From positions 31,248,001 to 31,305,525 of the forward strand of contig NC_086101.1 of assembly GCF_963921235.1 (NCBI RefSeq): DNA of 57,525 bases, written 5' to 3'. Of the stretch, positions 345 to 27,794 are shown in pieces. The position numbers were made by a program, and so were the translations under genes. Each line of letters opens with the position of its first letter. Position 1 is the first letter of the stretch. Origin of the DNA: Mobula hypostoma (lineage: Eukaryota). The notes beneath the pieces are model-generated. The model was not told the DNA's origin. It saw nothing but the letters and a program-made list of their open reading frames with translations, and searched no databases.

Positions 345-2670
345 GCTTACCTAGTTTTGGGATCACATGAATACCAAGGCTGTCATCTGAAACCCGATGG
401 GGGACCAATATGCCTGCGGGCAGGTTTGTTAGAGCTGTTGGGGAGGGTTTAAACGAATTTGGCAAGGGGTGGGAACCAGAGTGAAGGGACTCGGGGTAGG
501 ACGGATGGTAAAAAAGCAAAGATAGCGAGCAGCCATACTGTCAGGAAGGGCAGGCAGATGATGGGACAAAGTTGCAGCCAGCAGGGTGAATATCAGTGCA
601 TTAGGCATGCAGAATCAAAAAGGGTAGCAAACACGGTACTCATAAAGTGTTATATCTCAATGCACGGAGCATAAGAAATAAGCTGGATGATCGTGTTGCG
701 CTATTACAGATTGTCAGGTATGATGTTGTGGACATCACTGAATCATGGCTGAAGGATGGTTGTAGTTGGAAGCCGAAAGTCCAAGGTTACACATTGTATC
801 GGAGGGATAGGAAGGTAGGGAGAGTGGGTGTCATGGCTCTTCTGGTAAAGAATGGTATCAAATCGGTAGAAAGATGTGACATAGGAACAGAAGATGTTGA
901 ATCCTTGTGGGTTGAGTTAAGAAACTGCAAGAGTAAAAGTAAAAGTCTCTGGCAGTTAAATACAGGTCTCCCAACAGTAGCTGGGATGTGGACCATAGAT
1001 TACGATGGGAAATAGAAAAGGTGTGTCAAAAGGGCAATGTTATGATAGTCATGGGAAGTTTCAACATGCATGTCAATTGCAAAAATCAGGTTGGTAATGG
1101 AGCTCAAGAGTGTGAGTTGGTTGAATGCCTACAAGATGTCAAAAGTTTTAAGTTCCTTGGGGTCAATATCACAAGTGACCTGACTTGGTCCAACCAAGCA
1201 GAGTTCACTGCCAAGAAGGCCCACCAGCACCTTTACTTCCTGAGAAAACTAAAGAAATTTGGCCTGTCCCCTAAAACTCCTACTAATTTTTATAGATGCA
1301 CTGTAGAGAGCATTCTTCTGGGGTGCATCACAACCTGGTATGGAAGTTGTCCTGTCCAGGATTGGAAGAAGCTGCAGAAGATCGTGAACACGGCGCATCA
1401 CATCACACAAACCAATCTCCCGTCCTTGGACTCACTTTACACCGCACGCTGTCGGAGCAGTGCTGCCAGGATAATCAAGGACACGACCCACCCAGCCAAC
1501 ACACTTTTCGGCCCTCTTCCCTCTGGGAGAAAGCTCAGGAGCTTGAAGACTCGTACGGTCAGATTCGGGAACAGCTTCTTTCCAACTGTGATAAGACTGC
1601 TGAAAGGATCTGGGCCGTACCCTCCAAATATCCGGACCTGCCTCTCGGTTTTTTTTGCACTACCTTACTTTCCTTTTTTCTATTTTCTATTTATGACTTA
1701 TAATTTAAATTTTTAATATTTACTAATTTGTACTATTTTTAATATTTAATATTTGTAATCCAGGGAGCAGGAAGCGCAGAATCAAATATCGCTGTGATGA
1801 TTGTATGTTCTAGTATCAATTGTTTGGCGACAGTAAAGTATAAAGATGGCTTTTTAGAGCAGTTTTTCGTTGAGCCTACTAGGGGATTGGCTATACTGGT
1901 TTGGGTGGTTATGTAATGAACCAGAGTTGATTAGGGAGCTACAGGTAAAAGAACTCTTAGGAGGCAGTGATCACAATGATTGAGTTCAACTTGAAATTTG
2001 ATAGGGAGAAATTAAAGTAGCAGTATTTCACTGGAGTAAAGGGAATTACAGTGGTATGAGAGAGGAGTTGGCCAAAGTAAATTGGAAGGAGATGCTGGCA
2101 GGGATGAACAGAGCAGCAATGGCATGATTTTCTGGGAAAAATGAGGAAGGTACAGGGTAGATGTATTCCAAAAACAAAAAAAAAATACTCAAATGGCAAA
2201 TAGTACAACCATGGCTGAAAAAGGAAGTCAAAACTAATGTAAAAGCAAAAGAGAGGGCTTACAACAAAGCAAAAATTATCAGGAAGGCAAAGGACTGGGA
2301 AGGTTTTAAAACCCTACAGAGGGTAACTATAAAAGAATTATTAGGAAGGAAAAGATGAAATATGAAAGCAAGCTAGCAAACAATATCAAAGTGGATAGAT
2401 AGTAAAAGCTTTTTCAGTATGTAAAAAAAAAAGAGAGCTGAGAGTGGATATAGAACCACTAGAAAATGAGGCTGGAGAAGTAATAACAGGGGACAAGGAG
2501 ATGACAGATGAAATAAATGAGTATTTTGCATCAGTCTTCATTGTGGAAGACAGTAGCAGTATGCCTGAGGTTGTGTGAAGGAAGAGAAATGGGTGCAGTT
2601 ACTATTACAAGAGAGAAGGTGCTCAAAAAGCTGAAAGACCTAAAGATACGTTAGTCACCTGGACCTACTG
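345..2670 (+). mobile_element. CR1 LINE (end of ORF1 plus APE endonuclease region of ORF2), decayed, interrupted by Rex1
   Basis: LYLNARSIRNKL...YDVVDITESWL is the CR1 APE N-terminus. The sequence resumes at 1843 (gatggctttttagagcag) and is collinear with the CR1 copy starting near 17725. Confidence 0.9.
1139..1842 (+). mobile_element. Rex1/Babar LINE 3' end nested in CR1
   Basis: FKFLGVNITSDLTWS...KKAHQHLYFLRKL...[10 protein letters not shown] is the Rex1/Babar C-terminal region. Flanked by AAGATG at 1133-1138 and 1843-1848. Confidence 0.85.
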
Positions 2671-2859
2671 TACTGTAGTCTCTACTGTAGTGCTCTGTGA
2701 CTCTAGACCCATGTATCTGATCCTAAAGCCCAGTGAGCAGTCCCATAATACCTGCTTGTGTAAAATGCACTCATTTGCTGAGGTTAGGCCACTTGTGCAT
2801 TATCTAAATATTTTTCTTGTTAATGCAGCATAATTGATTATATTTCTTATCCAAATCAG

Positions 2860-3168
2860 GTGGAAGGGAAGTAGCGACTGGCAGCTTTGGCTCTTCGATG
2901 TTACTGGATCCCAAATTTACAGTCAATCACAGCAAGGAAGAAGTTGTTTGGGAGTGGAAAAATTGGAATAGCACCAAATCTCTGGTTATTTTAGATCACG
3001 TCCCTAGTAGACCTTCCATGTTTCCAAGTGAACAGTTCGAACACCGTTTACAGTTCAATATTTCTAATGGCGCGCTGACGATAAATCCACTGGAACGCCG
3101 TGATGAAGGAATTTACATCGTATATGTACAGGGAGAAAAGAAGAAAGAAGTAGTTTTGCACGTTTACG
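2860..3168 (+). CDS. Exon: Ig V-type domain lacking the canonical disulfide
   Basis: Acceptor tttcttatccaaatcAG, donor G|GTGAGT, 309 nt, phase 1/1. C-strand VVWEW, D/E/F strands [24 protein letters not shown] (DxGxY), no Cys, as in CD2/CD58/SLAM/CEACAM N-domains. Sequons NHS, NST, NIS. Confidence 0.9.
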
Positions 3169-6100: not shown

Positions 6101-9100
6101 GTTCATTGACTTGCTGGAAAACAAATCTTCTCCCAAGTTGCAGTTCTCTTGGAGACTGCATCAGGTTTTTCTCCAGGATTTCCCTGTATTTTGCTGCATT
6201 CATTTTAACCTCTACTTTCACAAGTCTTCAAGAGCCTGTTGCAGTGAAGAATCCCCACAGCACGATGCAGCCACCATCATGCTTCACGGAAGGATGGCGT
6301 GTTTTTGATGATGTGTGGTGTTTGCCTTGCACCAAACAGTGTTTAGTCTGATGGCCAAAAAGCTCAATTTTGGTTTCATCAAACCATAGAACCTTCTAAC
6401 AGCTGACTTCAGAGTCTCCACATGCTCTCGGGTAAACTCTAGCCGAGATTTCACGTGAGTTTTTTTTCAGCAATGGCTTGTCTTTGCCATTCTCCCATAA
6501 AGCTGTGACTGGTGAAGCACCCGGGCAACAGTTGTTGTATGCTCAGTCTCTCCCATCTCAGCCACTGAAGCTTGTAGCTCCTCCCAGAGCTGATTCACCA
6601 GCAGTTGGACCTTCCAGATACAACTGTATTTTTACTACAATCAGTTGAAACACCCTGACTGCACACAGTGACCTCTGTTTAACTAATGAAGTGATTTCTA
6701 AAACCAAATGGCTAGCCAGTGATGATTTGGTGTGTCATATTAAAGGGGGTGAATACCTGCGCAGTCAATTATTGTGTGTTTTATATTTGTAATTAATTTA
6801 GATCACTTTGTAGAGATTTGTTTTCACTTTGACACGAGTCGTTTTCTGTTGATCAGTGTCAAAAAAAAACAAATTAAATCCACTGTGATTCAATGTTGTA
6901 CAACAATAATACATGAAAACTACCAAGGGGGCTGAATACTTTTTCTAGGCACTGTGTACAAGGAGCAATGTAGTGGCCAATTTGACCACCATTAACCTGC
7001 TACGTTTCATTGATTTAAATATTAGCTCTATTTGTCATACGTACATCAAAGCATATGGTTAAAATGAGTCATTTGTGTCAATGAGGAACACAGTCCGAGG
7101 ATGTGTTGGTCATTGACATAAGAGTTGTCATGGTTTTGGCAACATAACATGACCACATCTCTCTAACCATAACCCTTATGTCATTGGAATGTGGGAGGAA
7201 ACCAGAGCACCCAGAGGAAATCCATGTGGTCAGAGGGAGAACACAAACGCTTTACAGACAGTTGCAGAAAAAGACTGGGACACTCCTGTCTCTCCTGTGT
7301 TTCCCTCCCAGTGCCCTGTTACCTGTTCACCCGCTTCCTTCCTCTTTGTTGCAGCTGAAGAGAAATTACAAAATAAATTGACTTTAAAAATGCGCTGCTC
7401 GTGTGTAAATTGTAGCACATACAACCATGTTGCATAAAGGCAGCTCATTTTTTCCTGCATATTTGATACAAAGCACCAAGTAAAGTTTTGTCACAAGACT
7501 TGGAAGGAGAAAATGGCGACGCGACGCAGCTCGCAGCAGTCACTTCGGTGAATGATATCTGTTACTTGTCAAGTAGGATGCCGTGCACAATCCTGATTTG
7601 ATGGAGACAGATGTGAGAGCACGGAGGAACATCTGGTGAAACTTCTGAAATGCCGCTGCTACTGTGTGATCTGAAATCTCCCAGAGGGGAAGGCCCCGAG
7701 TCATCGGCTTTGCTTGTTGCTCAGCGGCCGGGGCGGGATCAAAGTGCTCGGCAGAAATGCCGCTCGGTGCTCGGCGTCGGAGGGCTGGTCGGAGGCTTGA
7801 AGTTTTCAGACGGACTCGGAGTCGGCTGTGGTCGGGTGCTCCAATGCTCCAAGCAAGTTTGCGGCGCTTCCGTCTGCGTGAGATGATGGAGCTATCGGGA
7901 CTTGAGACTTTTTTTTTACTGTGCCCATGGTCTGCTGTTTATCAAATTACGTTATTGCTTTGCACTGTTGTAACTATATGTTATAATTATGTGGTTTTGT
8001 CAGTTAGTCTTGGTTAGTCCTGTGTTTCTGTGATATCTTTCTGGAGGAACATTGTATCATTTTTTAATGCATGCATTTCTAAATGACAATAAATGAGGAC
8101 TGAGTGTCCTCATAATCTAATCTAAGTAACTGTAGTTCACTAATCTTATTTTCCTCTTTAGAAGAGCTGTCTGACGCTATGATATTGGACAACTTCAGCT
8201 CCCTCAGTTCCACCATCCAACTCACCTGTAACGTCAGCGGAGATCCACTTAAGTATCAGTGGCAGTACAATGGAGGGGAAATCTTGGAGCGTCACCAGCT
8301 AATGGACGGGAACAGAACTCTTATTGCTTCAAAACGTGACTGTGGAATCTTCACCTGTGTGGCAACCAATCTCGTCAACTCTGTGAGGGCAAATTACACC
8401 CTAACTGTTCCTGGTGAGTTTGCTTTACGGATAACAATCTGGGTATATTTCTGTTATCGCTTGCAGTTGATGTAATGTTGAATGCAACTTGAGCAAATCA
8501 GCACAACAGCAGCAACACAGATTTGGGGTTTTCAGGATTACAGTTCAGATGGAGATCACTGAGCCCACCAAGTCTAAACGCTCAGTTTCAGGCTCCCCTA
8601 CCTGCTGTGACCTTATTGATGTACCTCATTATTTTATAAATGTCTCCAACGCTGCCCGCATCTTCCAGGAGAAAGATGCCTAATGTATCTAGCCTCTCCA
8701 GTCCCAGTAACAGCCTCATAAATCTTTTTCCCTCTCTTTTCAGTTTAATGACAACCCCTTGCCATACAAATCCTTTTCTTTGAGATACTTATCCAGACCC
8801 CTTGAACACTAAAATTAAATCCTTCTCCATTATGACCCCTTAGCAAAGCAGTTCAGACCCTAATCAGTTAGATTCTTCCAACCATCTCCATCCTATGTCA
8901 TCTTGTTTTTACCCTACCTATCTAATCTATCCATACCCTTCTGTTTTTAAACACTATTATCCATCTGATGTCCTCTATTCTTCCAAGGAGAACAACCCTG
9001 TCTTAAATGCACTTAGTCTATTTCTGACACTTTTCTCCCTTTTCTGAATCTCTGGGGATGAACTGTCTACCAATATCTTTTATAAACTTGTCTACTCTTA

Positions 9101-12100
9101 CAGCTATCTTGACTATACTTCTTCCCACCTTGTCATCTGTTAAAATTGCCATTTCCTTTTCTCAGTTCTTTCGTCTCCTCCAAATCTGTTCTCAGGGTGA
9201 GGCTTTCATTTCAAATCTGTTCTCAGGGTGAGGCTTTCATTCCAAATCTGTTCTCAAGGTGAGGCTTTCATCTCAAATCTGTTCTCAGGGTGAGGCTTTC
9301 ATTTCAAATCTGTTCTCAGGGTGAGGCTTTCATTTCAAATCTGTTCTCAGGGTGAGGCTTTCATCTCCAGAACATCAGAGATGCCCTCCGTCTGCAAAGA
9401 ACATGGTTTCCCTTCCTCTACCATTCACGCTGCCCTCACCTGCATCTCCTCCATTTCCGGACATCTGCACTTACCCCATCTCCTGCCACACGAACAGGGA
9501 TAGAGCTGGGAGTTCTTGTCCATGCCTACCATCCCAAGAGCCTTCGCATCCAGCACACAGTTCTCTGCAACTTCTGCCATCTTCAATAGGATCCCGCCAC
9601 CAAATACATCTTTATGCCTAAACCCTCCCACTGCTCTCTGCTTTCTGCAGGGATCACTCTCTCCATGATTATCTTGTCTATTAGTACCTCCCCACTAATC
9701 TCCCTCCCTACCGAAAGTGGAAGTAGTGCTACTGTTGCCCATTCACTTCCTCCCTTACATACATTCAGAACCTCAAACAATCCCTCCAGGTGAGGCAGCA
9801 CTTCACCTCTGAATCTATTGGGGTTGTCTACTCTATTCAGTGCTCCCGATGCGACCTCCTCTACATTGATGAGACCCAGTGTAGATTAGGGGACCACTTT
9901 ATCGAGCACCTTCACTCCATCTGCAACAAGCAATACTTCCCAGTGGCTAACCATCTGAATTCCAGTCCCTACTCCCATTTCAAGATGTCAGTTCATACCC
10001 TCTTCTACTGCCACGGCAAGGCCACTCTCAGATTGGAGGAGCATCACCTCCTATCCTGTCTGGGTAGCCTCCTACCTGATGACATGAAAATCAATTGTTC
10101 TAACTTCTGGTAGTTTTCCCCACTCCCTCTTACCTCTTCTTCCTTTCCCCACTTGTTCCCATCTTGCCTCTTCTCCTTTCCTCACTTGCCTATAACCTTC
10201 CCCAGTGCTGCTCCTCCTTCCCTTTCTCCCTTTGGCCGATCATTCGCTCCTTTCACATCCTTCCTTCAGCCCTCTACCTTTTCCTCCTTTAACCTCAGGG
10301 CCTCTCACTTCATCTCCCACCCACCTGACTTCACCTTCCAGCTTGTACTCCTTCCCCTCCCCCACACTTACTCTGGCTTCTTCCCCGTCCTCTTCAGTCC
10401 TGCTGAAGGATCTCAGCCCAGAATATCGACTGTTTATTCTGCTGACCTGAGTTTCTCCAGTATTTTGTATGTATGACTCTGACAAACAGCCAATGTGTAA
10501 AAGACACATTGTGCAAGTAAAAGAAATACATAATATTCAGAACGTGAGTTGTGGAGTCCTTGAAAATGAGTCTGTATGTTGTGGAATCAGTTCAGAGTAG
10601 TGGAGAGTGGAGTTATCCATGTTGGTTCAAGGGAGACTTATGGTTGTGTGGTCAACCTAAAGCTCTTGTACCTCCTGCCCAATGGTAGTGGTGAGAGGGG
10701 AGCATGGCCTGGATAGTGGGGGCCAAGTGGTTAAAGCATTGGACTAGTGACCTGAAGGTTGTGAATTTGAGCCCCAGCAGAGGCAATGTGTTGTGTCCTT
10801 GAGCAAGGCACTTAACCACACGTTGCTCTGCAACGACACTGGTGCCAAGCTGTATGGGTCCTAATGCCCTTCCCTTGGACAACATTGGTGTCATGGAGAG
10901 GGGAGACTTGCAGCATGGGCAACTGCTGGTCTTCCATACAGCCTTGCCCAGGCCTGCGCCCTGGAGAGTGAAGACTTTCCAGGTGCAGATCCATGGTCTC
11001 GCAAGACTAACAGATGATGATGATGGATGCTGCTTTCCTGGGGCAGCGCTCCGTGTAAATGTAGACACAGGCTGTATATGTTGTTCATGCGCTTGCTGAA
11101 GCTTGGCCCAAAGTTTTGAACCTCCAACTTTAGAATGTGAAACCTCTTTAGACCATTTCGAACTATTTTCCAGTTTAGGCAGTTGGTGCGAAATCACTCG
11201 TCTCCTTTCAGATCTTCATGTTCTGTCTTCAGTCCTGCATTTCTTCACTTTCTTGGTAGGGCAAGTCGTCCTGTTGGCTGCAGACTTTCATTGATTCCAT
11301 TATGTTTCTTGTGTTTACTATGCCTGCAAGAAAATGAATCTGAGTTGTATATGGTGACATATATGTACTTGGGTTATTAATTTACTTTGAACAAGACCGG
11401 ACCTGTAGTAGTGTAATTTATCTTCAGAAAAACAAAGCAAGAAATAGTAGAGTCAGGTCTATGCTTTACATAGGACTTTGGATGGTGTTTTGAAATAAGG
11501 GCTAGTTCCTTCTTTGACAATTATGAAAATAAGGAGAATGGTCTTGCCTCTTGTTAAGTAATGCATGCAAAAATCTTTCCCCTTCCTCTGTGATTCTTCC
11601 GCATCCTTCCACTTCTCTTACTTTGGCATAGTCATCGAACTGTTGGATACTAATAAACATACTCATGGTCGTCTCGTACTCCAACTAGAAATAACAACAT
11701 TTCAGTGATAATTCTGGCTATTTTGTAGGTTAATTATTAAGTGGTGTGATGCAGTTGCTGCAGTAAAACTGGTTTCTAGAAAATATTCAATTAGCTAAGC
11801 TATTAGAAAACTTACTGACTAATTACATGTAGGTGATTATATAAAATTAGAAGCAAACACAGCAAAGTTAATCTACAAGAAAAATAACAATTTTACGCTA
11901 ATCCAGCATTTGGGGTGTCACAGTACTGTAGAGTTTAGTGTAATGCTATCACAATGCCAGTGACCCAGGTTCATTTCCCACTGCTGTCTGTAAGGCATTT
12001 GTATTGCAGGAGTTGATAGCTTTCATGGTCATTTCTCTGGTGCGCTGATAGATTCTTTCAATTTATTTTCATATGCAGGCTTTCTCCCCGAGAACATCGC

Positions 12101-15100
12101 AATTGTGGTCCTGTTTATCATAGAGCTCGGGGTTTCGCTGTATCGTATCGTGCCAGTGCTTCTTTGCTGCTGGAAAAAGGAATTGGGTAAAGGTATCCAT
12201 CACTGTATGAATTATATTTAAATATAAACACTCAGTTAACATTGGGCTCTGGAAGGGAAGTTGCTAATGAATAGCGTCAAGTGAATAGGGCGTGGGTTTT
12301 TAAAGATAAGCTGATGGAATCTGGGAAGAGATGTAATTCCAACTCCAGGGCAGCAAGGGACATTTCGGAGTTTAGTCCAGTGGATGAAGGGAAGAGAATA
12401 GTCACAGGACAGATGAACAGTCTCAGTCAGAGCCATCCATGGGTTCAGTGTACTTTGCAGGGAGATCTCTGGGTGAATGATGGAGACATCAGTGAATTGG
12501 GGTTATCATTGCACCTCTGCATAATCTTTGAACAAACAGTTTGCTGGCAACACAGGACGTAGTGATGATTAGTTCAGCGCAGGCGGACCTTGTGATGGTC
12601 ACTTAAGCCAGTGTTCACACTCAGTCCATTAGACATGAAATGGCTGAGATGGAGGGTAAACCATGGAGAGGGAGTAGGAACCCAAGAATATCAGAAGCAG
12701 GAGGTAGCCATTCAGCCTTTGTCTGAACATTTACCTCTCTCAGTTACCAGCCCCAACCCATATCACTGCATTGTGTTAACCTCTAAATCAATCTTTGCCC
12801 TAAAGGTAGTTGGTGACAGAATCTCCACAGCCCTTTGGAGAATCGCAAAGGTTACCAAACCTGTTTTTCCACCCGCCTCCCCCCCCCCATCTGTCCTGAA
12901 TGGCTGAGACCTTATTCTGAGCCTGTCATTCCTCGTTGAAGTTATCCCAGACAGGATTGCCATCAACTCCACTTCATGATAAGCAAGCCCCACTGAATGT
13001 TTCATAAGGATCTCCTGCTCTCCTTTTCTGCCATGGAGGTTTATAGGATTAATCTTTAAATGCTGAACCTGAACTCTCTTCCTCTTATCCCACATCTACC
13101 CGTTCCTGAGTGGAGGAAACCAGATCTGTACATGTGTTAAAAGTTGGAAGAAATTGCTTTATTAGACTTGATTAGGGATAAATACAGAGAGAAAAACAGT
13201 TAATGAATATAGTAAGAGACAATGTACATAATCACCAAGCCAATTTACGCAAGGGACCACAAATATCCACCTGCCTTTTCCAGTCACCCCTCACCCATCT
13301 TGATGTCCTTGTGCCTCTGTCTCCAGCTCTTACCACCAGTCACTGCCCAGCCTAAGAGAAGGTTCCCTTTTGCCTAAAGAAACTGTCCCTTTTTATACCA
13401 TTTCAAGATCTTTTACTCTTAATACTTTCCCATACAAACTTTTCCCCCCCCATTTTCTACTCGGAAAGCTGTAGACTAGTACTCACAATAAATTTCCAAA
13501 ACATTGCTGAGACTAGTTCCCTTGTGCTTTCTCAAAGCATACACGTTCAGGACTAACTCCCTCCATTTTCTCATATAAGTTTCTATTTTGTTACACATCT
13601 TGGCGCATACTGAGGAGGAATTGAATATAACTCTTTCCTTACAGGGCAGCATGTTGATTTCCTTCCTAATCAATGTCCACACCTGTAACTTAATTTCCGG
13701 TCATCTGTGCACAAGGGCATTTGGGTCCCTCTGAGCACCAGCATCTTTTATTCTGCCCTTTTCTCCTACCAAGGTGAGAGTGATGATGCAGTGGGAGCAA
13801 AGGATTCAGCGATATTGAAGAGGATGTGATCTAACACCTGACTGAGTAGCTTCTGAAGCATGGATACGTGGATATGAATTTCAAAATGTCATGGGAAGGG
13901 ATTTGAGGAAGAAACTTTTCCAGGAGTAGGATTGAAGATTGGAGTATGGGTGAGGAGCAAATCAAGAAGGCAGCTCGCCACTACATTCTTGCAGAATAGA
14001 AAGAGAATCGTAAATGTTGGCCCCACTAGCAACGCCTGAATGAATTAAGAGAAGAAGAGGTGTCCCCTGGATGTAGTGGTGGTGAATTCCTAGGATCTGG
14101 TTCACCAGGTATCATTAGGCTCCCTGGACAGCCTTTACTCTTTCTATATTCTGTCCCTTCATTTGGGCAGTTCTTGTAACAGGAGTAACAGTTTGCATGC
14201 AGGACCACAACACTGCCCAGTGCCTGTGAGCATCTGGGTTCAATGATGTTGCAACCCTCAGCATCAGAAGAGGCTTCAGGATCAGACATTGAAACTTTAG
14301 TGGTACAGCCGGGGTTGGTTATTGTCACTAGTGACAAGACTGTGTCACTAGTGACTGCTACTTGATAATGAGATTACACAAGATACTAAAATGTAAGGTG
14401 TTTCCCTCTGTTGTGTTTTGCCCCTCCCTGAACTCCCCTCTCCTCTTTTCTGTCTCTTCTCCCCACCCCCCCGCCCCCCCCCCCCCCCACCAGCCCCTCA
14501 CGTTGTTGCTGTTGGCTGTGAGATCTTGCTGATTCCTGTGTGGAACCATTTTTCTGCCTTTCACATATTGAATGTTCTCGATTTGTTCCTCTGTAGCCCT
14601 GATGAGCAGAAAATGTTTGCTGTTCTTGAATCTTACTGATGTTCTGCTTCTTCTCATTATCTTCATTGCTTTCATATACTGGATTATGGTTAAAGGTAGG
14701 TGCACAGATATTATTTACTTGGAAAATAATGATCACTTCTGCACTCAGCAGGGTAACTGGAATGGAATGAGTATCTCAGTACATTGTGAGCTGCTTTACC
14801 TGGAACACCAGCACCTGCAGTCCTCAGCCCCACAGCCCTTGTCGGGAGTGGAGTGGGGTGGGTGGTGTTAGGGAAACCTGCTGAAGGATTAAACTTTAAT
14901 AGCTGAACATCAGTGATTCAGTTCAAAGCTGTTGGTCACAACCAGCGTGGTTTGGCCCAGTATAGATTAGTTTTGTGAGGTCAGACTGGGTGGCAGAAGG
15001 CATTTGAAGAAGTTTAAGTTGAAGCTCACGGAACTGAAGGTGTGTTCTAGCCCGGGTTAGATAATTGGTTTAGTGGTGGGATGCAAAGTGTGGGGATAAC

Positions 15101-18100
15101 CTGCAGGAGCTGTGGTTCTAGGATGTGACTAATGCACAGATGATCTGCTGGATGAGCTCAGTGAGTCGAGCAGTGTCTATGGGATGTGTGTGGGAGGGGG
15201 AGGGGTTGTTGTTTTGGATCGAAATCTTGCACCGCACTTGGGACATGGCTAATTCCTTACCAAAGAAGATGCTGCTCATTCCGCTGAGTTCTCCCCAGCA
15301 GATAGTTAGTTGTTCCAGATTCCAGCATCTGCCATCTCTTGTCTCTTAGGATGTGACTAACGGTGTTCTGCACAGATCTGTGTTGGGGTGTAACTAGTCC
15401 CCAGGTTTCAGTGCTGGATGAAGTGTGGTAGGTACAAGCTCATCACCGTGCTGACCACTGATGCAGAGATGGGTGTCATTTTGAACTGTGAACTGCAACA
15501 ATAACTCCCAGTGACTAATAGATCGAGCACACAGATGAAACTGACCAGAGGGTTTCACTGCAATTTGGCTTGGACTTCAAAAAAAAAAGAAAATTTAAAA
15601 ACTATTTTAAAAAGAAGTTGAATAGTTAGAAACTATTTTAAAAATAAGTTGAATAGTTAGAAGCAGTTGGAGGCTTAATATTCCTGGAATCTGTATTCAT
15701 GGATCATTAAAATGTCACAAATAGAGAAAATTGGGTACTGGAATGGTGGTCTTCAAACCCAGAACACTGGAGTATAGGAGGGTAGAAGTTATGCTGCAGC
15801 CAAGCAATATCCTGGTTAGACTTCATTGGAGTTGGGAGCAGTTCTGGGCCCAAAAGTGAGAACATTGCATTGTTGGCATCAATGTGCTGACACACTCAGA
15901 ATGGGAGAGTAATGACTTGGCCATGGGATGAAGGGATGAAGAAGGAATCTGATGGGAAATAAATGCAGCCCAGACATGGTCATTCACATACCTAAAACCA
16001 ATGCAGAAATCATAATGCTGAGGACTGGGATTACTGCATCTTATTGGTTTGAGTGCTGTTTCAGGAAAGCAGCATCTATCAGCAAGGATCCCCACCATAT
16101 TGGTTATGCTGTCTTCTCACTGCTGCCATCAGGAAGGAGGTACGGGAGCCTCTGGTCCCACACCACCAGCTTCAGGAACAGTTATTTCCCTTCAACTATC
16201 ACGCTCTTAAACCAAAGGGTCAATCACCCTACCTACTGATTCCACAGCCTATGAACTCACTTTCAAGGACTCTACAATTCGTGTTCTTGATATTTATTGC
16301 TTATTTATTTATTATTTTTTTCTAGTTTTGCATTTACACTTTGGTTGTCTGTCGTGGTGTGCAGATTTTCATTGATTCTGTTATGTGCCTTTGTATTTAC
16401 TGTGAATCGCCACAAGAAAATAAATCTCACGGTCGTGTGTGGTGACATGTACTTTAATAATAAATTTACTTTGAACTTTTGGGGGAGGGGAGGAGAAGAT
16501 GGCGACGCGGCGCGACGCAGCGCCCATGGCCGCTCCAAAATGATATCATATTTGTTAAGTAGGGACTGTGACAATCCCGATTTGATGGAGACAGACGTGA
16601 GAAGCACGGAGGAACATCTGGAGAAACTTCTGAAATGCCTGCTTCGCTGCCGCTGCTACTGTGCAATTGAGAATCTCCGGAGGGGAAGGCCCCAAATCCA
16701 CGGCTTTGCCTATTGCCTGTTGCCAGGGCCAGGGTCAAAGCACTCGGCAGAGATGGTGCTCGGTGCTCAGTGTCGGAGGGCTGGTTGGAGGCTCAAAGTT
16801 TTTGGACAGACTCGAGAGTCGGCTGTTGTCGGGTGCTTCCAGGGTGCTGCATCGGCAAGTTTGCGGCGCTGGAAGCTCATAGCAGGGAGAGTTTTTTTTC
16901 TTTCTTCCTTCTACTGTCTGCGTGAGATGATGGGACTTTCGAGAGACTTTGAGACTTTTTTTTTTACGGTGCCCATGGTCTGTTCTTTATCAAATTACGG
17001 TATTGCTTTGCACTGTTGTAACTATATGTTATAATTATGTGGTTTTTGTCAGTTTTTCAGTCTTGATTTGTCTTATGTTTCTGTGATATCGTTCTGGAGG
17101 AACATTATATCATTTCTTAATGCATGCATTACTAAATGACAATAAAAGAGGACTGCGTATCCACATAATCTAATCTAATTTCCTTTGAAATACTGTGTGA
17201 ACTGATTTTGTTTTTCACTTTGCTGCAGGTGTTGCCTTTATATCAGTGTTGGTTCTATGCACCATGTCTGCGCAGCTTCTGGCTTTGATTCTACCATTCA
17301 TTATTCGGAAGTTAAGTTGCCCATCTATTAAATATCTCCAACAATTTCTCGGTAAGGAGCAGATCATTAAATTATTGAAATTTCCAATCTGATCAATGAA
17401 ACAATCTCTAACCATCACACCATCTATACTTGTCAGGGGCATGGGACTGGATTTTATACATCGTTGTGGTCATCGCCTCAATCGCGTTCTTTGTGATTTA
17501 TGGAAACAGTGAGTTTGCTAAGAGCTCTTCATTTCTGTTCTGACATTACAAGCTTCTGATCATCTACACTGAAGTGATCACTCCCAACGATTAAATTCAG
17601 ATCTGTGATATCTTTGCAAATTCTACTGCCCTAATAACACAGGTGTGACAGTTTTGGTGGTGAACCTTGAATTATCCCACCCAGAGTGGATTCAGTCACC
17701 TTGCTTTCATTGCTTCTTCCAAGTGATGCTCAGTGTTGGATCACAAGAGAGGGAATGTGTTGAATGCCTACGAGATGGCTTTTTAGAGCAGCTGGTGCTT
17801 GAACCTTCTTGCGGAGAGGCTATCTTAGATTGTGTGTTGTGTAATAACCCAGATCTTATTAGGGAGCTTAACGTGAAGGAACCTTTAGGAGGCAGTGATC
17901 ATAATATGATTGAATTCATACTGCAATTTGAGAGGGAGAAGCATAAATCACATGTATCAGTATCACAATGGAATAACAGGAGTTACAAAGACATGAGAGA
18001 GGAGCTTGCCCAGGTGGGTTGGAGAAGGATACGGGTGGCGATGATGGCAGAGCAGAGGTGGCTGAAGTTTCTGGGGATAGTTCACAAGGCACAGAATGGA

Positions 18101-21100
18101 TATGTCCCACAGAGGAAGAAGTTCTCAAATGGCAGGGATAGGCAACTGTGTTTGACAAAGGAAGTTAAGGACTGTATAAAGCCAAGGAGAGGGCAAATAA
18201 GGTAGCAAAAGTGATTGGGAAGCTTTTAAAATCCAACAAAAAGCAACTAAAAATAACAATAAGAAGGGAAAAGATGAAATATGAGGGCAGACTAGCCAAT
18301 AGTATAAAGCAGAATACCCGAAGTTTTTTCAGTTACATAAAGAGTAAAAGGGAGGTGAGAGTTGATATTGGACCAGTGGAAAACTGTTGGTGAGGTAATG
18401 GGGGATAAAGAAATGGCAGATTAACTTAATGGGTACTTTGTATCTGTCTTCATTATGGAAGACATTAGCGGTGTGCCAGAGGTGTTTGAGTTTCAGGGAG
18501 CCAGAGTGCTGTTGCTATCACAAAGGAAAAAGTTCCAGGCAAAGGTCTTAAGGTGGATGAGTCACCTGGGCCAGATGGACTACGGGCCAGAGTCCTGAGA
18601 GAGGTTGCTGAAGAGATGACAGATGCAGTGGTCATGATGTTTGCAGAATCACTTGATTCTGGCATGGTTCCAGAGAACTGCAAGGTTGCAAATGTCACTT
18701 CAATCTTTAAGAAGTGAGGCAGGCCAAAGAAAGGAAATTATTGGCCAGTTATCCTAATGTCAATGGTTGGGAAAATGTTGGAGTTTAATATTAAGGATGA
18801 GGTTTCAAGGTACTTGGAGACTAATTGTAACCCTCAGGTTCTGTCGGCTGCATAAGTCTGGGGAAGACAATCTCTGGCCCCGCCAAACGTGTGAAATTGA
18901 GGTGCAAAACCTCCTGTTTGTGTGGATGCTACGTGATTTGTTACCCTGTTACAAATCAGTATCATGAAATAACAAACAGTACACCATATGCAATTAAACT
19001 ATTTAGCTTTATAATTCTTAATTTGACTAAAGGGTTAGTAAAGAAAAACAAAAAGAAAAAGGTCCATTTTAATGGAACAGTGTAATGTGCACAAGTTGGA
19101 GCTCATGGTTTCCCTTTCACCAATCCTCCTTCGATTTCTACGGGCTTCGTCGACTCCCGGCTCAACTCCAAGTCCACTCCTTTCTGGTGTCTTCTCTCTC
19201 CTCCTCCCACCGAGCAGAAGACCCAGATCACCTGAGTGTCAGGCACACCCCACGGAAACACACTCCACTCACTGAATGACTCACTTTCCAAAGCCCCCGT
19301 TATCTCTAACCATAACCCAAACACTGCTTCTACAGAAAGACCATTACATTAGCAGTGAAACCTTTCCCAGGGTGTTAAATGATAAAATAAGCCAAACTCA
19401 GCATGGTTTCGGTAAAGGGAAATCTTGCCTGACAAATCTATTGGAGTTTTTCAAGGAAGTAAAAGCAGGGTGGACAAGGGAAAGGCAGTGGATGTCATTT
19501 ACTTGGATTTTTGGAAAGCGTTTGATAAGGTGCTACACATGAGGCTGCTTAACAAGATGGTGTTACAGGAAAGGTACTGGCCTGGATAGCGGAATGGCTG
19601 ACAGCCAGGAGGCAGCGAGTGGGAATAAAAGGGGCCTTTTCTGACTGGCTATCGGTGACTAGTGGTGTTCCTCGGGCATTGATATTGAGACCACTACTTT
19701 TCACATTGTTTGTCAGTGATTTAGATAATGGAATTGATGGCTTTGTTGCCAAGTTTCTGGATGATACGATGATAGGTGGAGGGGTTGGTACTGCTGAGGA
19801 AACAATGCGATGCAGCAGAACTTAGACAAATTGGAAGAATGGGCAAAAAAAGTGGCAGATGGGATACAGTGCTGGGAAATCTATGATAATGTATTTTGGT
19901 AAAAGGAGCAATATTGCGGACTATTTAAATGGGGAGAAGGTTCAAACATCAGAGGTGCAGAGGGACTTAACAGTCCTTGTGCAAGACTTCCAGAAGCTTA
20001 ATTTAGAGGTTGAGTCTCTGGTAAAGAAGGCAAATGCAATGTTGGCATTTATTTCAAGAAGAATAGAATATAAAAACGGGGGGATAACACTGAGTCTTTA
20101 TAAGACACTTGCCAGGCCGCAGTTGAAGTATTGTCCATAGTTTAGGGCCCCATATCTCAGAAAAGATGTGTTGTTATTGGAGGGAGTCCAGAGGAGGTTC
20201 ACAAGGATGATTTTGGGCATTAAGGACATGTGAGGAGTGTTTGGCAGCTTTGGGCCTGTACTCGTTGGAACTTAGAAGAATGCGGAGGGGGGAATCTCAT
20301 TGAAAGCTATCAAATATTGAAAGGACTAGATGGGGTGGATGTGGAAAGGATGTTTCTGATGAGGAGCAGAATCCAGAACTAGAGGGCACAGCCTCAAAAT
20401 TGAGGGGCGACCCTTTAGAACAGGTAAGGAGGAATGTCTTGTACCTGTGGCATCTAGACTTTTATGTATGTAGAGCAGGCATATTACTTTGTTACTGGAT
20501 GATTAACAGCAACTAACAGTAACAATCCTACATCAGTTCCTCATTGTCTGTGCAGATTGTACATGAGGTTGTTCTGTAAAGTGCCTTTGGATGGGTTACT
20601 ACATCCTAAAATCTTTTTTCAGCAGCAGTTAGTCTGATCAATCATTCTAGTTACACCCTCGCCCCACCCTCTATATCTATTACTTCACTTACTACACTGC
20701 ACTGTAGTATAATGCTGATTTCATTGTAAATACAAGCTGGTGTTTGAGTGCATTTTACTCCTATATAGTTATTGAACATTGTTGTTTTCAGTTGCTTGCC
20801 ACGCCAACAAGTGCACAGCAAATTTAGAATTTAGTGAATAAAGCTGGTTGTTAATAGAGATATGAGGGGAAGTGGGGGCCCTGTATCAGGTCACTCAATG
20901 ACTACACCATATCCATTTTCAGATCCAGGATGTGACAGCAGCCCGGAAACCTGGAGAATATTCTTCTTTACAAGGATTTGGACTGCGGTGATTTTCTTAT
21001 CCGTTGTGGCCCAATACTGTAAGTGTCAAAATTATCAAATCATTCAGCATTTCCATCCTTTCCCCAGGAACTCGGTCTCAGTGAAAACTTTTGCCGGTTC

Positions 21101-24100
21101 TCACTAGCACTTCAGCTTCTGAAAGGGAGAAGTAGGGAAATCATCAGCTGGTTATCGGGTCTGTCCCGTACTGGCTGCTGGTTATTGGGTCTGTCTCGTA
21201 CTGGTTGCTGACGTTTGGGTCTGTCCCGTACTGTTTGCTGACGTTCGGGTCTGTCCCGTACTGTTTGCTGACGTTCGGGTCTGTCCCGTACTGTTTGCTG
21301 ACGTTCGGGTCTGTCCCGTACTGTTTGCTGACGTTCGGGTCTGTCCCGTACTGGTTGCTGACGTTCGGGTCTGTCCCGTACTGGTTGCTGACGTTCGGGT
21401 CTGTCCCGTACTGGTTGCTGACGTTCGGGTCTGTCCCGTACTGTTTGCTGACGTTCGGGTCTGTCCCGTACTGGTTGCTGACGTTCGGGTCTGTCCCGTA
21501 CTGGTTGCTGACGTTCGGGTCTGTCCCGTACTGGTTGCTGACGTTCGAGTCTGTCCCGTACTGGTTGCTGACGTTCGGGTCTGTCCCGTACTGGGTGCTG
21601 ACGTTCGGGTCTGTCCCGTACTGGGTGCTGACGTTCGGGTCTGTCCCGTACTGGGTGCTGACGTTCGGGTCTGTCCCGTACTGGGTGCTGACGTTCGGGT
21701 CTGTCCCGTACTGGTTGCTGACGTTCGGGTCTGTCCCGTACTGGTTGCTGACGTTCGGGTCTGTCCCGTACTGGTTGCTGACGTTCGGAACAGCTCCGGC
21801 CTCTATTTCGCTGAATCCTGCTGGACCGTTAGTACAGAGCTGCCTGAATATCCCAACTGGTGGGATATCAGACTTGGGTTTAATATCTCTGCATATGTGG
21901 TGAAACTTATTTTGTGCAGCAGTACATTGCAATGCATATTAGTGAAAAAATATATAAATTACGAGAAGAAACCTATATAAACAAATTTGAAAAGTAGTGC
22001 AAGAAGAGAACAAAAAAGAAAAAATACTGAGGTAGTTGCATGTTCATTATATATTCAGAAGTCTGATGGCAAAGGGGAAGAAGCTGTTCCTGAATCGTTG
22101 AGTGTCTCTCTTCAGGCTCCTGTACAGCCTCCTTAATGGTAGCAACGAGAAGAGGTCATGTTGCATGTTCTAGGTGATGGAGGTCCATTTTAATGATGAA
22201 TACTGCCCGTTGAGGCATTGCCTTTTGACTGTGTCCTTGATGCTGGGGAGGCTAATGCCCACGATGGAGCTGGTCGAGTTTACAACTTACAGCAGTGTTT
22301 TCTGATCCTGTGCAGTGGCTTCCAAACCAGCCAATGATAGAGCCACGCACATAAAAGTTGCTGGTGAACGCAGCAGGCCAGGCAGCATCTATAGGAAGAG
22401 ATACAGTCGACGTTTCGGGCCGAGACCCTTCATCAGAACTAACTGGGGGAAGAGATAGTAAGAGATTTGAGAGGGGGAGGAGGAGATCCGAAATGATAGG
22501 AGAAGACAGGAGGGGGAGGGATGGAGCCAAGAGCTGGACAGGTGATTGGCAAAAGCGATACGAGAGGATCATGGGATGGGAGGGCTAGGGAGAAAGAAAG
22601 GGGGGGGGGGGAGCCCAGAGGATGGCCCAGGAGTATAGTGAGAGGGACAGAGGGAGAAAAAGGAGAGAGAGAAAAAAATTAATAATAATAAATAAATAAC
22701 GGATGGGGTACAAAGGGGAGGTGGGGCATTAGCAGAAGTTAGAGAAGTCAATGTTCATGCCATCAGGTTGGGGGCTACCCAGATGGAATATAAGGTGTTG
22801 TTCCTCCAACCTGAGTGTGGCTTCATCTTGACAGTAGAGGAGGCCGTGGATGGACATATCAGAATGGGAATGGGACTTGGAAATAAAATGTGTGGCCACT
22901 CGGAGATCCTGCTTTCTCTGGCGGATAGAGCGTAGGTGTTCAGCGAAACGGTCTTCCAGCCTGCGTCGGGACTCGCCAATGTATAGAAGGCCACATCGGG
23001 AGCACCGGACACAGTATATCACCCCAGCCGACTCACAGGTGAAGTGAATGATAGAGCCAGCTAGAATGCTCTCCACAGTACATCTGTAGAAATTTGTGAG
23101 CGTGTTTGGTAACGTACCAAGTCTCCTCAAACTCCTAATGAAATGTAGCCACCGTCGTGCGTTCTTTGTAACTGCACCGATATGTTGGGCCCAGTATTGA
23201 TGTTCAGAGATGTGGACTCCCAGGAGCTCGAAGCTGCTCACCCTTTGCAGTGATGAAGACGTGTGTGCATGTGCGTCTGTGTGTGTGTGTGCACTGCCTC
23301 AACGACTATCGCCCAGTTGCGCTCACTTCGACAGTGATGAAGTGCTTTGTGAAGACAAATTGCAGTGGGTCCAGGTCCTTGTTTAGGCAGAAGTTGATTT
23401 TGGCCGTGACCAAAACTTCCCCTTCATAAAGTACACCATCAATTCCTTGGTCTTACTGATGTTGTTGCAGCACTACCCAACCAGATGATCTAACTCGCTC
23501 CTGTAAGCCTCCCCATTGCCATCTGAAATTCTGCTAACACATCGGCAAATTTATAGAGGCCATTTGAGCTGCGCCTAGCCACACGGTTGTGTGTATGGAG
23601 ATTAGAGCTATGGGCTAAGCATGCATTCTTGAGGTGCACCAGTGTTGATTGTCAGCGACAGAGAGATGATTATTTCCGCACTGACTCATCTAGTGAGGAA
23701 GTCGTGGATCCAGTTGCAGAGGGAGGTACAGAGGCCCAGAACTTAGAGCTTGTTGATTAGAACTGAGGGCATGTTGTGTTGAATGCTGAGCTGTAATCAA
23801 TAAACAGCAGCCTGACACAGGTATTGCTATTGTCCAGGTAATCCAAGGCCAAGTGAGATTGCATCTATTGTGCTGATAGGCAAATTGCAGTGGGTCCAGG
23901 TCCTTAGGCAGAAGTTGATTTTGGCCATGACCAACTTCACAAAGCACTTCATCACCGTAGAAGCGAGTGCAACTGGGCAATAGTCGTTGAGGCAGCTCAC
24001 CTGCTCTTCTTGGGCGCTGGTATGATTATTGCCCTTTTGAAGCATGTGGGAATTTCCAGCTGCTGCAGTGAGAGATTGAAGGTGTCCTTGAACTCTCCTG

Positions 24101-27100: not shown

Positions 27101-27794
27101 GAATTTATAAAGAGCTTTTACTTCATTTCAGGTAGAGACAAACGTGGAAGTGAGGATGGCAGTACTGTCAAAGGAGAGCAGGTATGTAGTCAATGCGAAT
27201 TGCTGCCATTTGTTATAAAGTTCATTTCCTGTGTTAAGCTGACTGACACAAACCCCCACGTTAACCCAAACACAATTCATAATGCTGCTGTCCCTCAGGT
27301 GCAGCCCAGGGAGAACGTCAGCATCTGGGCTGATCTCTGTGGGCGGCACAGTAGCGCAATGCTTTTACAGCGCCAGGTTCGGTTCCTGCAACTGTCTGCA
27401 AGGAACTTATACGTTCTCCCGGTGACTCCATTGCTCTCCACCGGGTGCTCCACGCTCCTCCTATGTCCCGAAGACACATCGATCAGTAGGTTGATTTGCC
27501 ACAATGCTGTAATTGGAAACGGAGTCTTGTTGGATCAGAAAGGCCTGTTACTGTCCTGTATCTCTTAAATAAAATAAAATGCTCACATTCCTGAATCATT
27601 CCAAATTTGTGCCTGGTTCTTAACACTGATGCTGCCTTTGATCGTCTGTCTGTATCTCCCCCACCGAACAATGCTGCTCTTGATTGATTGGGATTTGCCG
27701 TTCCAAATAACAATATACTTCATTTTCATTTTAGGATGATGGAGAAGTGCAGGAATTGAAGCAGTCTGCACCAGATCACCCAGATGATCAATGA
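2860..27794 (+). CDS. Spliced gene (5' exon outside window): IgV + IgC2 + five-TM membrane protein with CD47-like topology and a CD2/SLAM/CEACAM/HepaCAM-like ectodomain
   Basis: Exons 2860-3168, 8162-8413, 12079-12192 (or -12186), 14597-14695, 17229-17351, 17437-17508, 20923-21018, 27132-27181, 27735-27794. All have canonical AG acceptors and, where internal, GT donors; phases match and the join has no internal stop. Translation: [103 protein letters not shown]/[288 protein letters not shown]. Confidence 0.8.
3760..3985 (+). mobile_element. CR1-type 3' tail fragment
   Basis: Ends gggcctgtttccatgctctatgac, like the CR1 3' end at about 56070-56110. Confidence 0.6.
4290..5395 (+). mobile_element. 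Rex1/Babar LINE 3' fragment with (TA)n tract
   Basis: [11 protein letters not shown] (RT motif) and [14 protein letters not shown]...[11 protein letters not shown]. (TA)n at about 5357-5378. Confidence 0.85.
5607..6954 (-). mobile_element. Tc1-family DNA transposon, internally deleted, long (~200 bp) TIRs
   Basis: Left end TA|CAGTCTCTATAAAAAGTATTCACCCC; right end reverse-complements to CAGTGCCTAGAAAAAGTATTCAGCCCC. Minus-strand transposase remnants [14 protein letters not shown] (about 6350-6395) and [17 protein letters not shown] (decayed DD34E motifs). Confidence 0.92.
7170..7270 (-). mobile_element. V-SINE (HE1-like) fragment
   Basis: gtgggaggaaaccagagcacccagaggaaa is the antisense of the V-SINE core GGTTTCCTCCGGGTGCTCCGGTTTCCTCCCAC. 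Confidence 0.75.
7502..8125 (+). mobile_element. Non-autonomous LINE-tailed retroelement, copy 1
   Basis: Starts GGAAGGAGAAAATGGCGACGCG, CpG-rich, ends AATAAA...(AATCT)n. Closely matches 16481-17179. Confidence 0.8.
8162..8413 (+). CDS. Exon: Ig C2-type domain
   Basis: Acceptor ttttcctctttAG (TAGAAG tandem acceptor), donor G|GTGAGT, 252 nt, phase 1/1. LTC...YQW..NG...GNRTL...[11 protein letters not shown] pattern. Sequons NFS, NVS, NRT, NYT. Confidence 0.9.
9060..10470 (+). mobile_element. Penelope-like element 3' part (GIY-YIG), decayed
   Basis: [36 protein letters not shown] is the Penelope GIY-YIG endonuclease, followed by a pyrimidine-rich spacer and a degenerate hammerhead at about 10396-10432. 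Confidence 0.88.
9181..9366. repeat. 31-bp minisatellite x6 (CAAATCTGTTCTCAGGGTGAGGCTTTCATTT) inside Penelope
   Basis: Unit starts at 9181, 9212, 9243, 9274, 9305, 9336. Confidence 0.95.
10480..11065 (-). mobile_element. Rex1/Babar 3' fragment interrupted by a SINE
   Basis: gagcatggcctgg...gatggatgctgctttcct matches the antisense Rex1 copy at 30415-30900. Confidence 0.7.
10716..11015 (+). mobile_element. tRNA-derived SINE with CORE-like domain and RTE-like tail
   Basis: A-box-like GGCCAAGTGG, degenerate B box, GTGTCCTTGAGCAAGGCACTTAACC (CORE-like), 3' CCATGGTCTCGCAAGACT. Confidence 0.7.
12079..12192 (+). CDS. Exon: TM1 ([38 protein letters not shown])
   Basis: Acceptor ttttcatatgcAG. Two in-frame phase-1 donors: after 12186 (GTAAAG) and after 12192 (GTATCC). 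Hydrophobic run followed by CC and a basic KK stop-transfer. Confidence 0.82.
12680..13130 (-). mobile_element. CR1 3' fragment, old
   Basis: caagaatatcagaagcaggaggtagccattcagcc resembles the antisense CR1 3' end at 52290. Confidence 0.55.
14597..14695 (+). CDS. Exon: TM2 ([33 protein letters not shown])
   Basis: Acceptor tttgttcctctgtAG, donor AAAG|GTAGGT, 99 nt, phase 1/1, strongly hydrophobic. Confidence 0.8.
16050..16480 (+). mobile_element. Rex1/Babar 3' end
   Basis: [11 protein letters not shown]...[11 protein letters not shown]...TSFRNSYFP; tail aataaatttactttgaacttt. Confidence 0.85.
16481..17179 (+). mobile_element. Non-autonomous LINE-tailed retroelement, copy 2
   Basis: Starts GGGGGAGGGGAGGAGAAGATGGCGACGCG, ends AATAAA...(AATCT)n. 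Homologous to 7502-8125. Confidence 0.8.
17229..17351 (+). CDS. Exon: TM3 plus cytoplasmic loop ([41 protein letters not shown])
   Basis: Acceptor tttttcactttgctgcAG, donor G|GTAAGG, 123 nt, phase 1/1. Confidence 0.82.
17437..17508 (+). CDS. Exon: TM4 ([24 protein letters not shown])
   Basis: 85-nt upstream intron with branch-point-like CTAAC, acceptor acttgtcAG, donor A|GTGAGT, 72 nt, phase 1/1. Confidence 0.8.
17725..20440 (+). mobile_element. CR1 LINE ORF2 (APE to RT), decayed, interrupted by a solo LTR
   Basis: [12 protein letters not shown]...[11 protein letters not shown]; [18 protein letters not shown]; VTSGVP...[10 protein letters not shown]...KFLDDT. Confidence 0.92.
18826..19377 (-). 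mobile_element. Solo LTR inserted in CR1
   Basis: Begins TGTAACCCT, ends AGGGTGTTA with the terminal CA and TSD partly lost. CR1 sequence (gagactaat/gataaaataagcc) is continuous across it. Orientation tentative. Confidence 0.7.
20923..21018 (+). CDS. Exon: extracellular loop with Cys plus TM5 ([32 protein letters not shown])
   Basis: Acceptor ccattttcAG, donor T|GTAAGT, 96 nt, phase 1/1. Confidence 0.8.
21147..21788. repeat. 30-bp minisatellite, about 21 copies (CTGGTTGCTGACGTTCGGGTCTGTCCCGTA)
   Basis: Near-perfect tandem units with variant blocks CTGTTT/CTGGTT/CTGGGT; the first two units are more diverged. Confidence 0.98.
22346..23046 (-). mobile_element. 5'-truncated Penelope-like element, young, with 13-bp TSD
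   Basis: [37 protein letters not shown] (GIY-YIG). TSD AATGATAGAGCCA at 22333-22345 and 23047-23059. Confidence 0.93.
22404..22441 (-). ncRNA. Minimal type I hammerhead ribozyme motif in Penelope terminal repeat
   Basis: Minus strand reads UAGUU-CUGAUGA-AGGGUCUCGGCCC-GAAAC-GUC-GACUG: intact core, stem I UAGUU/GACUG, stem II GGGU/GCCC, palindromic ACGU in place of stem III. Confidence 0.75.
24112..24951 (-). mobile_element. Solo LTR (840 bp) with 4-bp TSD
   Basis: TGTTACG...CGTCACA termini. TSD GATG at 24108-24111 and 24952-24955. Minus-strand GATAAAAG near 24750 and AATAAA near 24195. Confidence 0.9.
25880..26580 (-). mobile_element. Penelope-like fragment, highly decayed
   Basis: Antisense similarity to the GIY-YIG region of the copy at 9060-10470. 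Confidence 0.5.
27132..27181 (+). CDS. Exon: cytoplasmic tail 1 ([17 protein letters not shown])
   Basis: Acceptor ttttacttcatttcAG, donor CAG|GTATGT, 50 nt, phase 1/0. Places basic residues directly after TM5. Confidence 0.72.
27340..27575 (+). mobile_element. V-SINE (HE1-like)
   Basis: GGCGGCACAGTAGCG head, ccgggtgctccacgctcctcc V-core remnant, CR1-like tail with (taaaa)n. Confidence 0.7.
27735..27794 (+). CDS. Last coding exon ([19 protein letters not shown])
   Basis: Acceptor cttcattttcattttAG, phase 0 matches the previous donor, TGA at 27792-27794, then AT-rich 3'UTR-like sequence with AATAAA at 28125-28130. Confidence 0.7.
   Translation, partial: DDGEVQELKQSAPDHPDDQ

Follow-up and report, generated by a model that had tools for sequence, protein, structure and literature searches.

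A Mobula hypostoma immunoglobulin-superfamily gene with one membrane helix per symmetric phase-1 exon, and its likeness to CD47

We analyzed a window of 57,525 nt from Mobula hypostoma (contig NC_086101.1, positions 31,248,001 to 31,305,525 of the forward strand; coordinates below count from the first letter of the window), a stretch of vertebrate DNA with abundant long interspersed nuclear element (LINE) fragments that carries nine exons of the gene LOC134346727 (Table 1). These exons encode an immunoglobulin (Ig) V domain, a membrane-proximal C2 domain, five transmembrane (TM) segments and a short tail. Spliced together, they give an exact copy of the RefSeq protein XP_062904360.1 over that span (100% identity). 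The record is isoform X1 of LOC134346727, 442 amino acids (aa) long and labeled "uncharacterized protein"; the gene is already annotated but unnamed. No signal exon was found in window positions 1-2860, and the leader residues of XP_062904360.1 are absent from the window; the leader of LOC134346727 lies upstream of it.

The five central exons form the core of the gene. A sequence-only reading of this DNA had proposed five consecutive phase-1/1 exons with one helix each, followed by two tail exons, and this arrangement is borne out by splice sites, reading frame, RefSeq identity and homology. Each of the five TM exons is bordered by an AG acceptor and a GT donor, has a length that is a multiple of 3 and contains a single hydrophobic stretch (5/5), and each is phase 1/1, since its first two bases complete a split codon and its last base opens the next one. 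We estimate at about 0.85 the probability that these are constitutive coding exons of LOC134346727, encoding a five-pass Ig-superfamily surface protein.

The protein would thread from an extracellular N terminus (N-out) to a cytoplasmic C terminus (C-in), starting with a V domain of CD2/SLAM-like type, continuing with a C2 domain and the five helices, and ending in a short tail of 36 residues that contains no tyrosine. The V domain matches Pfam V-set (E 1.5e-5) and is of the CD2/CD4/CD48-like kind in which the canonical Cys pair is absent; its best PDB matches are CD4 D1, CD48 and CD2. AlphaFold2 places the helices of the window protein at residues 242-273, 281-309, 313-337, 343-373 and 381-414, and the TM exons span residues 239-276, 277-309, 310-350, 351-374 and 375-406, so that exon borders are crossed only by the cytoplasmic start of helix 4 and by the end of helix 5. 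Five helices were obtained in two AlphaFold2 runs, in agreement with the hydropathy scan. Basic residues are placed after helices 1 and 3 and throughout the tail, and the TM4-TM5 loop is acidic, a charge pattern that, by the positive-inside rule, fits the N-out, C-in orientation. Five helices with the ectodomain outside and the tail inside is also the topology of CD47.

Table 1. Exons of LOC134346727 and other features of the window
Feature	Positions	Strand	Length and phase	Content
V-domain exon	2860-3168	+	309 nt, phase 1/1	XP_062904360.1 residues 53-154
Dispersed repeat, copy preceding C2 exon	7502-8047			75% identical to second copy, same orientation
C2/I-set Ig exon, membrane-proximal	8162-8413	+	252 nt, phase 1/1	Pfam Ig_3 and I-set
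TM1 exon	12079-12192	+	114 nt, or 108 nt via alternative donor 12186; phase 1/1	Linker, helix 1, then basic stop-transfer stretch
TM2 exon	14597-14695	+	99 nt, phase 1/1	
Dispersed repeat, copy preceding TM3 exon	16488-17100			Second of two copies
Hydrophobic open reading frame in dispersed repeat	16944-17069			AG/GT borders
TM3 exon	17229-17351	+	123 nt, phase 1/1	Opening residue a near-invariant Gly, made by a split codon; includes most of cytoplasmic loop 2
TM4 exon	17437-17508	+	72 nt, phase 1/1	
LINE fragment, sense	17609-20140	+		Weak reverse-transcriptase match at 19553-19822
TM5 exon	20923-21018	+	96 nt, phase 1/1	First residue the Cys of extracellular loop 2
Minisatellite	21155-21788			21 copies of a 30-nt unit, 97% matches
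Open reading frame with nuclease domain	22732-23298	-		GIY-YIG
Tail exon 1	27132-27181	+	50 nt, phase 1 in, phase 0 out	XP_062904360.1 residues 407-423; AG/GT borders
Tail exon 2	27735-27794	+		XP_062904360.1 residues 424-442 and TGA stop
AT-rich stretch holding a LINE	43383-47248	-		GC content 0.35-0.39; RNase H and endonuclease/exonuclease/phosphatase domains

LOC134346727 does not stand alone. A phmmer search with the V exon returned 182 proteins at E<=1e-3, many of which run to about 400 aa and combine one or two V domains with a C2 domain and some five hydrophobic segments; they come from RefSeq models of Mobula, Hypanus, Hemitrygon, Pristis, Amblyraja, Scyliorhinus, Mustelus, Heptranchias and Pristiophorus. 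These models go by names such as "uncharacterized protein," "HEPACAM family member 2-like," "CEACAM-like," "contactin-like" and similar. Over the membrane part, the 168-aa domain encoded by the five exons aligns end to end with paralogues of other species (30-48% identity, E down to 5e-36), and no TM exon is missing from the orthologues in M. birostris, Hypanus sabinus and Hemitrygon akajei, where the exons are 58-94% identical and all indels are of whole codons. Family members vary in having one or two V domains, some of them without C2, and in loop lengths and tails. Weak Pfam matches to Receptor_2B4 and SLAM occur in the family, and the first match outside it is fish Ly-9; a profile search of a 5.8-billion-protein set returned family members only. 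Our literature search found no published description of these proteins. Judged by homology over the whole domain and by the plan of one helix per phase-1 exon, LOC134346727 is a member of an undescribed and unnamed multigene family, here called the V-C2-pentaspan family, found in this study in sharks and rays only. Several RefSeq models from Hypanus, Hemitrygon and Mobula (P0001 of 941 aa, P0005 of 753 aa, and P0002/P0178) have 8-15 hydrophobic segments after their Ig domains, and these may represent tandem genes of the family fused by read-through, or else anchors that were truly duplicated.

To compare gene structures, family proteins were mapped exactly onto the DNA of four other loci, one each in Amblyraja radiata (P0198) and Heptranchias perlo (P0009) and two in Pristis pectinata (P0204 and P0157). 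At all four loci each helix has an exon of its own, 81-126 nt in size, and every junction from the signal exon through V, C2 and TM1-TM5 to tail exon 1 is phase 1; the junction between the two tail exons is phase 0 in all four, likewise in the window. The plan of one helix per symmetric exon has been kept since at least the shark-ray split. The TM3-TM4 intron (window positions 17352-17436) is 85 nt long in the window; its counterpart measures 87-89 nt at the skate locus and the two sawfish loci, and 1.96 kb at that of the sevengill shark. At the Amblyraja radiata locus an additional exon of 54 nt, likewise phase 1/1, intervenes between TM1 and TM2 (L001:32864-32917) and adds 18 residues to cytoplasmic loop 1, which shows that new symmetric exons are tolerated within the anchor. 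How the row of helix exons arose is another matter. Serial duplication of a TM exon, one of the origins offered by the sequence-only reading, finds no support: hhalign comparisons between the five exon-block profiles gave at most 4.5% probability for all pairs, no second DNA copy of any TM exon was found in the window, and the TM exons have no DNA similarity to one another. Short hydrophobic exons lose the signal of duplication quickly, so that duplication may still have occurred.

The conserved residues of the family suggest how the two halves of the protein are held together. The C2 domain carries a spare Cys in a D-C-G turn directly before the F-strand Cys, and the TM4-TM5 loop carries another; the conservation of each across the family is 90% or higher. 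Among 33 non-redundant family genes, both Cys residues are present in 27 and neither in 4, and none has the Ig Cys only; the remaining two have the loop Cys without the spare Ig Cys, and each of these has another extra Ig Cys near the A strand. This covariation has a Fisher p of 4e-4, uncorrected for phylogeny. The pattern supports a probable disulfide between the spare Ig Cys and the loop Cys, one that would hold the ectodomain to the helical bundle in the manner of the C15-C245 bond of CD47. A Gly at the TM2/TM3 exon junction, at the top of helix 3, is likewise at least 90% conserved. An aromatic residue followed by Pro and acidic residues leads into helix 1, and a Pro-Gly-Phe linker is confined to the subfamily of the window gene.

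Because the TM exons are symmetric (phase 1/1), dropping one preserves the reading frame, as the sequence-only reading had pointed out, and RefSeq models in other species in fact lack exactly one TM exon, be it TM2, TM3 or TM4. Isoform X2 of Pristis LOC127585900 (P0035) is without exactly the TM2 exon, and isoform X2 of Pristis LOC127585773 (P0053) without exactly the TM3 exon. Isoform X2 of Amblyraja LOC116990216 lacks 29 residues corresponding to the mapped 87-nt TM4 exon, and isoform X3 of the M. birostris orthologue of LOC134346727 lacks the 24-residue TM4 exon, with the junction codon predicted from the window bases. Both TM4 and TM5 are missing from the Hemitrygon locus model P0003. The two donors of the TM1 exon are also represented, as isoforms X1 and X2 of M. 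birostris, which match the 114-nt and the 108-nt form respectively, differ by the two residues that separate these forms. Each helix would then be an in-frame cassette that splicing can drop singly, and loss of a single helix would alter the helix number and move the tail and the loop Cys across the membrane. Variation of another kind is seen in Hypanus sabinus LOC132394451, whose five isoform models (P0184, P0092 and P0185-P0187) share their five-pass domain, the last tail exon being the sole difference among them.

How firmly can the five exons be read as parts of a working five-pass protein? Hydrophobic open reading frames (ORFs) in phase 1 are frequent, about 10 per 30 kb in a lenient scan, one of them within the dispersed repeat, so that a pattern scan alone is no proof of TM exons. 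The idea that the five exons are chance hydrophobic ORFs with chance AG and GT borders is nevertheless ruled out for practical purposes by the RefSeq identity, by homology in eight other species and by the conserved exon maps. A second alternative is that TM4 and TM5 are optional or decaying in the lineage of LOC134346727 and that the working product is three-pass, as in SKINT1. At the closest Hemitrygon akajei locus, all three isoform models (P0003, P0179 and P0180) pass straight from TM3 to the tail, which would stay intracellular with three helices too. However, TM4 and TM5 are intact, with good splice sites, 58-94% identity and whole-codon indels in M. birostris, Hypanus sabinus and a second H. 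akajei locus; every M. hypostoma isoform model includes both; and the loop Cys of the TM5 exon is near-invariant throughout the family. We regard the three-pass reading as very improbable. Several observations nonetheless weigh against a confident account of the five-pass protein, its tether and its skipped forms: the predicted TM bundle has a predicted local distance difference test (pLDDT) score of about 50-70, which is low confidence; covariation is the sole line of evidence behind the putative disulfide; and all isoforms discussed here are computational RefSeq models (XP_ records). At its own locus, moreover, LOC134346727 has three isoform models with five TM exons in all three and no documented skipping, and the closest Hemitrygon locus is modeled with three helices only, meaning that use of TM4 and TM5 may vary.

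Several introns of the gene contain repeats, some of which resemble coding sequence. The ORF inside the dispersed repeat that precedes the TM3 exon mimics a TM exon. The minisatellite lies directly past the TM5 exon, in the 6.1-kb intron before tail exon 1, and yields long open frames on both strands that are mistakable for coding sequence. Much of the TM4-TM5 intron is taken up by the sense LINE fragment, whose first part (17609-18202) looked by eye like the end of an endonuclease domain; Pfam gave no match there. The ORF with the GIY-YIG domain, in the same intron as the minisatellite, suggests a Penelope-like retroelement.

The build of the ray protein invites comparison with CD47, the integrin-associated protein known in humans as a "don't-eat-me" protein. 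The structural study of CD47 describes it as unique among immune receptors in having five passes, and its fold as without a counterpart elsewhere (PMC8410850). In the human gene, exons 1-7 are constant and encode the ectodomain, with IgV in exon 2, and the multiple-membrane-spanning domain, followed by alternative tails in exons 8-13 (PMC10902115); an exon count of 11 is also given (PMC11685207). With exons 1-7 constant and IgV in exon 2, five exons remain for the five helices. The parallel in layout drawn by the sequence-only reading therefore stands as far as exon counts from papers go, since both genes have five exons for the five-pass domain plus short alternative tails, but not for the ectodomain: the plan of CD47 is signal, a single IgV exon, five exons and alternative tails, and the ray gene has a V and a C2 exon ahead of its five TM exons and two tail exons. 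Both proteins have an Ig ectodomain immediately followed by a five-pass anchor, with the N terminus outside and the C terminus inside the cell. The likeness extends to single residues. The interdomain disulfide C15-C245 of CD47 joins the Ig domain to the TM4-TM5 loop, and an SWF loop (W118, F119) and a GLG motif (G191) are found at the top of helix 3 (PMC8410850). Likewise, CD47 and the ray family both have a TM4-TM5 loop Cys matched by an unpaired Ig Cys, and both have a Gly at the top of helix 3; these two likenesses, as well as the alternative tails, are analogies drawn without an alignment. The aromatic-Pro-acidic lead into helix 1 presumably resembles the CD47 linker as well, and we count it in favor of kinship.

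The differences between the two are equally clear. The ray family has two, sometimes three, Ig domains of CD2/SLAM V plus C2 type rather than a single CD47-type IgV, and its spare Ig Cys lies in the E-F turn rather than in the A strand as in CD47. CD47 is a single conserved gene, whereas the family of the ray gene is large and has expanded in elasmobranchs. The ray family also has isoform models that skip TM exons; we know of no report of such isoforms for CD47. Phase-1 symmetric exons are the default in Ig-superfamily genes, so that a shared phase by itself is weak evidence of kinship.

Searches for CD47 by sequence and by fold gave negative results. The Pfam family of the CD47 transmembrane region, PF04549, had no match in 7 full-length family proteins (E<=1), in 22 TM domains (E<=10) or in single exons. 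PF08204, the Pfam family of the CD47-type IgV, matched only the C2 domain, where its 16.7-18.5 bits fall short of the cut-off of 21. A family profile searched against the PDB found no CD47 chain at E<=10, nor did single queries; the PDB matches of the C2+TM part are Ig domains of contactin, CEACAM and ROBO. The CD47 fold (PDB 7MYZ) was absent from Foldseek searches of pdb, AFDB Swiss-Prot, BFVD and atlas and from a VIA-align wide search, a weak negative given a model with pLDDT 64 and a predicted template modeling score (pTM) of 0.42. These fold searches returned generic helical bundles or Ig matches only. The one lead toward CD47 came from the ESM Atlas, in which the best named cluster for the TM domain alone was CD47/OPG166, both for a sawfish member (0.70) and for the window protein (0.66), two queries that are about 40% identical to each other; these scores are far below the threshold of 0.9 set for a lead. 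Membership of the CD47 family fails the tests that were run, and the common ancestry with CD47 to which the sequence-only reading saw the intron pattern pointing was not borne out by the PF04549, PDB profile and fold searches, the shared phase being weak evidence.

Other relatives are suggested by the ectodomain. A V domain without the Cys pair followed by a C2 domain is the arrangement of the CD2/SLAM family, whose domain exons are in phase 1. Proteins of that family are single-pass or glycosylphosphatidylinositol (GPI) anchored, and the SLAM receptors signal via tyrosine switch motifs. The ray protein differs from them in both respects, with five helices and a tail free of tyrosine. The butyrophilin-related SKINT proteins (Skint1-11 in mouse) offer a likeness of a different sort: a V-type and a C-type Ig domain on a multi-pass anchor, encoded in a lineage-specific expanded cluster. 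SKINT1 consists of IgV, IgC and three TM regions, and SKINT genes are found in placental mammals only (PMC4382165, PMC5960712). In Foldseek searches with the C2+TM model, Skint3, Skint4 and Skint7 were aligned over both the Ig and the helical parts, with template modeling scores (TM-scores) of 0.27-0.30 and root mean square deviations of 14-21 A; since the scores are low and the deviations high, the alignment is driven by the Ig domain. SKINT clusters also occur among the language-model neighbors of the TM domain. However, SKINT has a B7/butyrophilin-type IgV and three TM regions, and the ray protein has a V domain without the Cys pair and five helices, in an elasmobranch. From the SKINT anchors it follows that multi-pass anchors were acquired repeatedly within the Ig superfamily, and convergence is therefore a credible reading.

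Two origins of the five-pass anchor can thus be weighed against each other. In one, the anchor has an origin of its own, separate from that of CD47: a CD2/SLAM-like gene with a single pass, whose signal, V, C2, TM and tail exons were all in phase 1, gained four helix exons and converged on a CD47-like build. We give this origin an even chance. It would account for the CD2/SLAM-like ectodomain seen in the PDB matches to CD4, CD48 and CD2, in the weak Receptor_2B4 and SLAM matches and in fish Ly-9, and for a TM1 exon that ends in a classic basic stop-transfer stretch. It has a precedent in the separate gain of multi-pass anchors by mammalian SKINT (PMC4382165, PMC5960712), and it agrees with the negative outcome of all CD47 sequence and fold tests. 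Against it, no duplication is visible among the five helix exons, either in the profiles or in the DNA; the CD47-like details (loop Cys, helix-3 Gly and tail splicing) are many, a high number for pure coincidence; and the language-model lead points to CD47 rather than to SKINT.

The other origin is shared ancestry with the CD47 membrane domain, the ray gene being either an old paralogue or the product of shuffling, in which a phase-1 exon block was joined to CD2/SLAM-type ectodomain exons; the exon layout would then be inherited. The same number and topology of helices speak for it, as do the five constant exons and alternative short tails of CD47 (PMC10902115), which are matched by the tail alternatives of Hypanus LOC132394451. 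The loop-2 Cys that covaries with a spare Ig Cys recalls C15-C245, and the near-invariant Gly atop helix 3 recalls G191 (PMC8410850). To these is added the best named ESM Atlas cluster for two members. A failed sequence search would even be expected under shared ancestry, because the membrane domains of CD47 diverge fast, human and viral forms sharing only 7 residues (PMC8410850). On the other side stand the lack of a PF04549 match, of a CD47 chain in the PDB profile search and of CD47 in the fold searches, together with Atlas scores far under the threshold, a spare Ig Cys in a different strand than that of CD47, an ectodomain of another type, and a phase that is the Ig-superfamily default. 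On balance we hold shared ancestry to be tenable and somewhat improbable. In its build the ray protein works like CD47, probably in its disulfide tether as well.

A broader scenario, which we offer as speculative and rather unlikely to hold in full, is that a module of one helix per exon, made portable by its phase-1 borders, became attached to CD2/SLAM-type ectodomains early in the history of cartilaginous fishes and later gave rise to a large receptor family, in which skipping of a helix exon switches the helix number and the side of the tail and of the tethering Cys. For annotation, the exon plan provides a simple rule for genes that pipelines now misname as VEGFR2-like, contactin-like or hemicentin-like. 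If the scenario is true, the supposedly unique five-pass fold of CD47 would not be unique. An old shark-ray family with different Ig domains on a five-pass anchor is a natural comparison set for CD47, one that invites the questions what purpose the anchor serves, whether it descends from an old module spread by shuffling, and whether the loss of single helices through splicing can change membrane topology.

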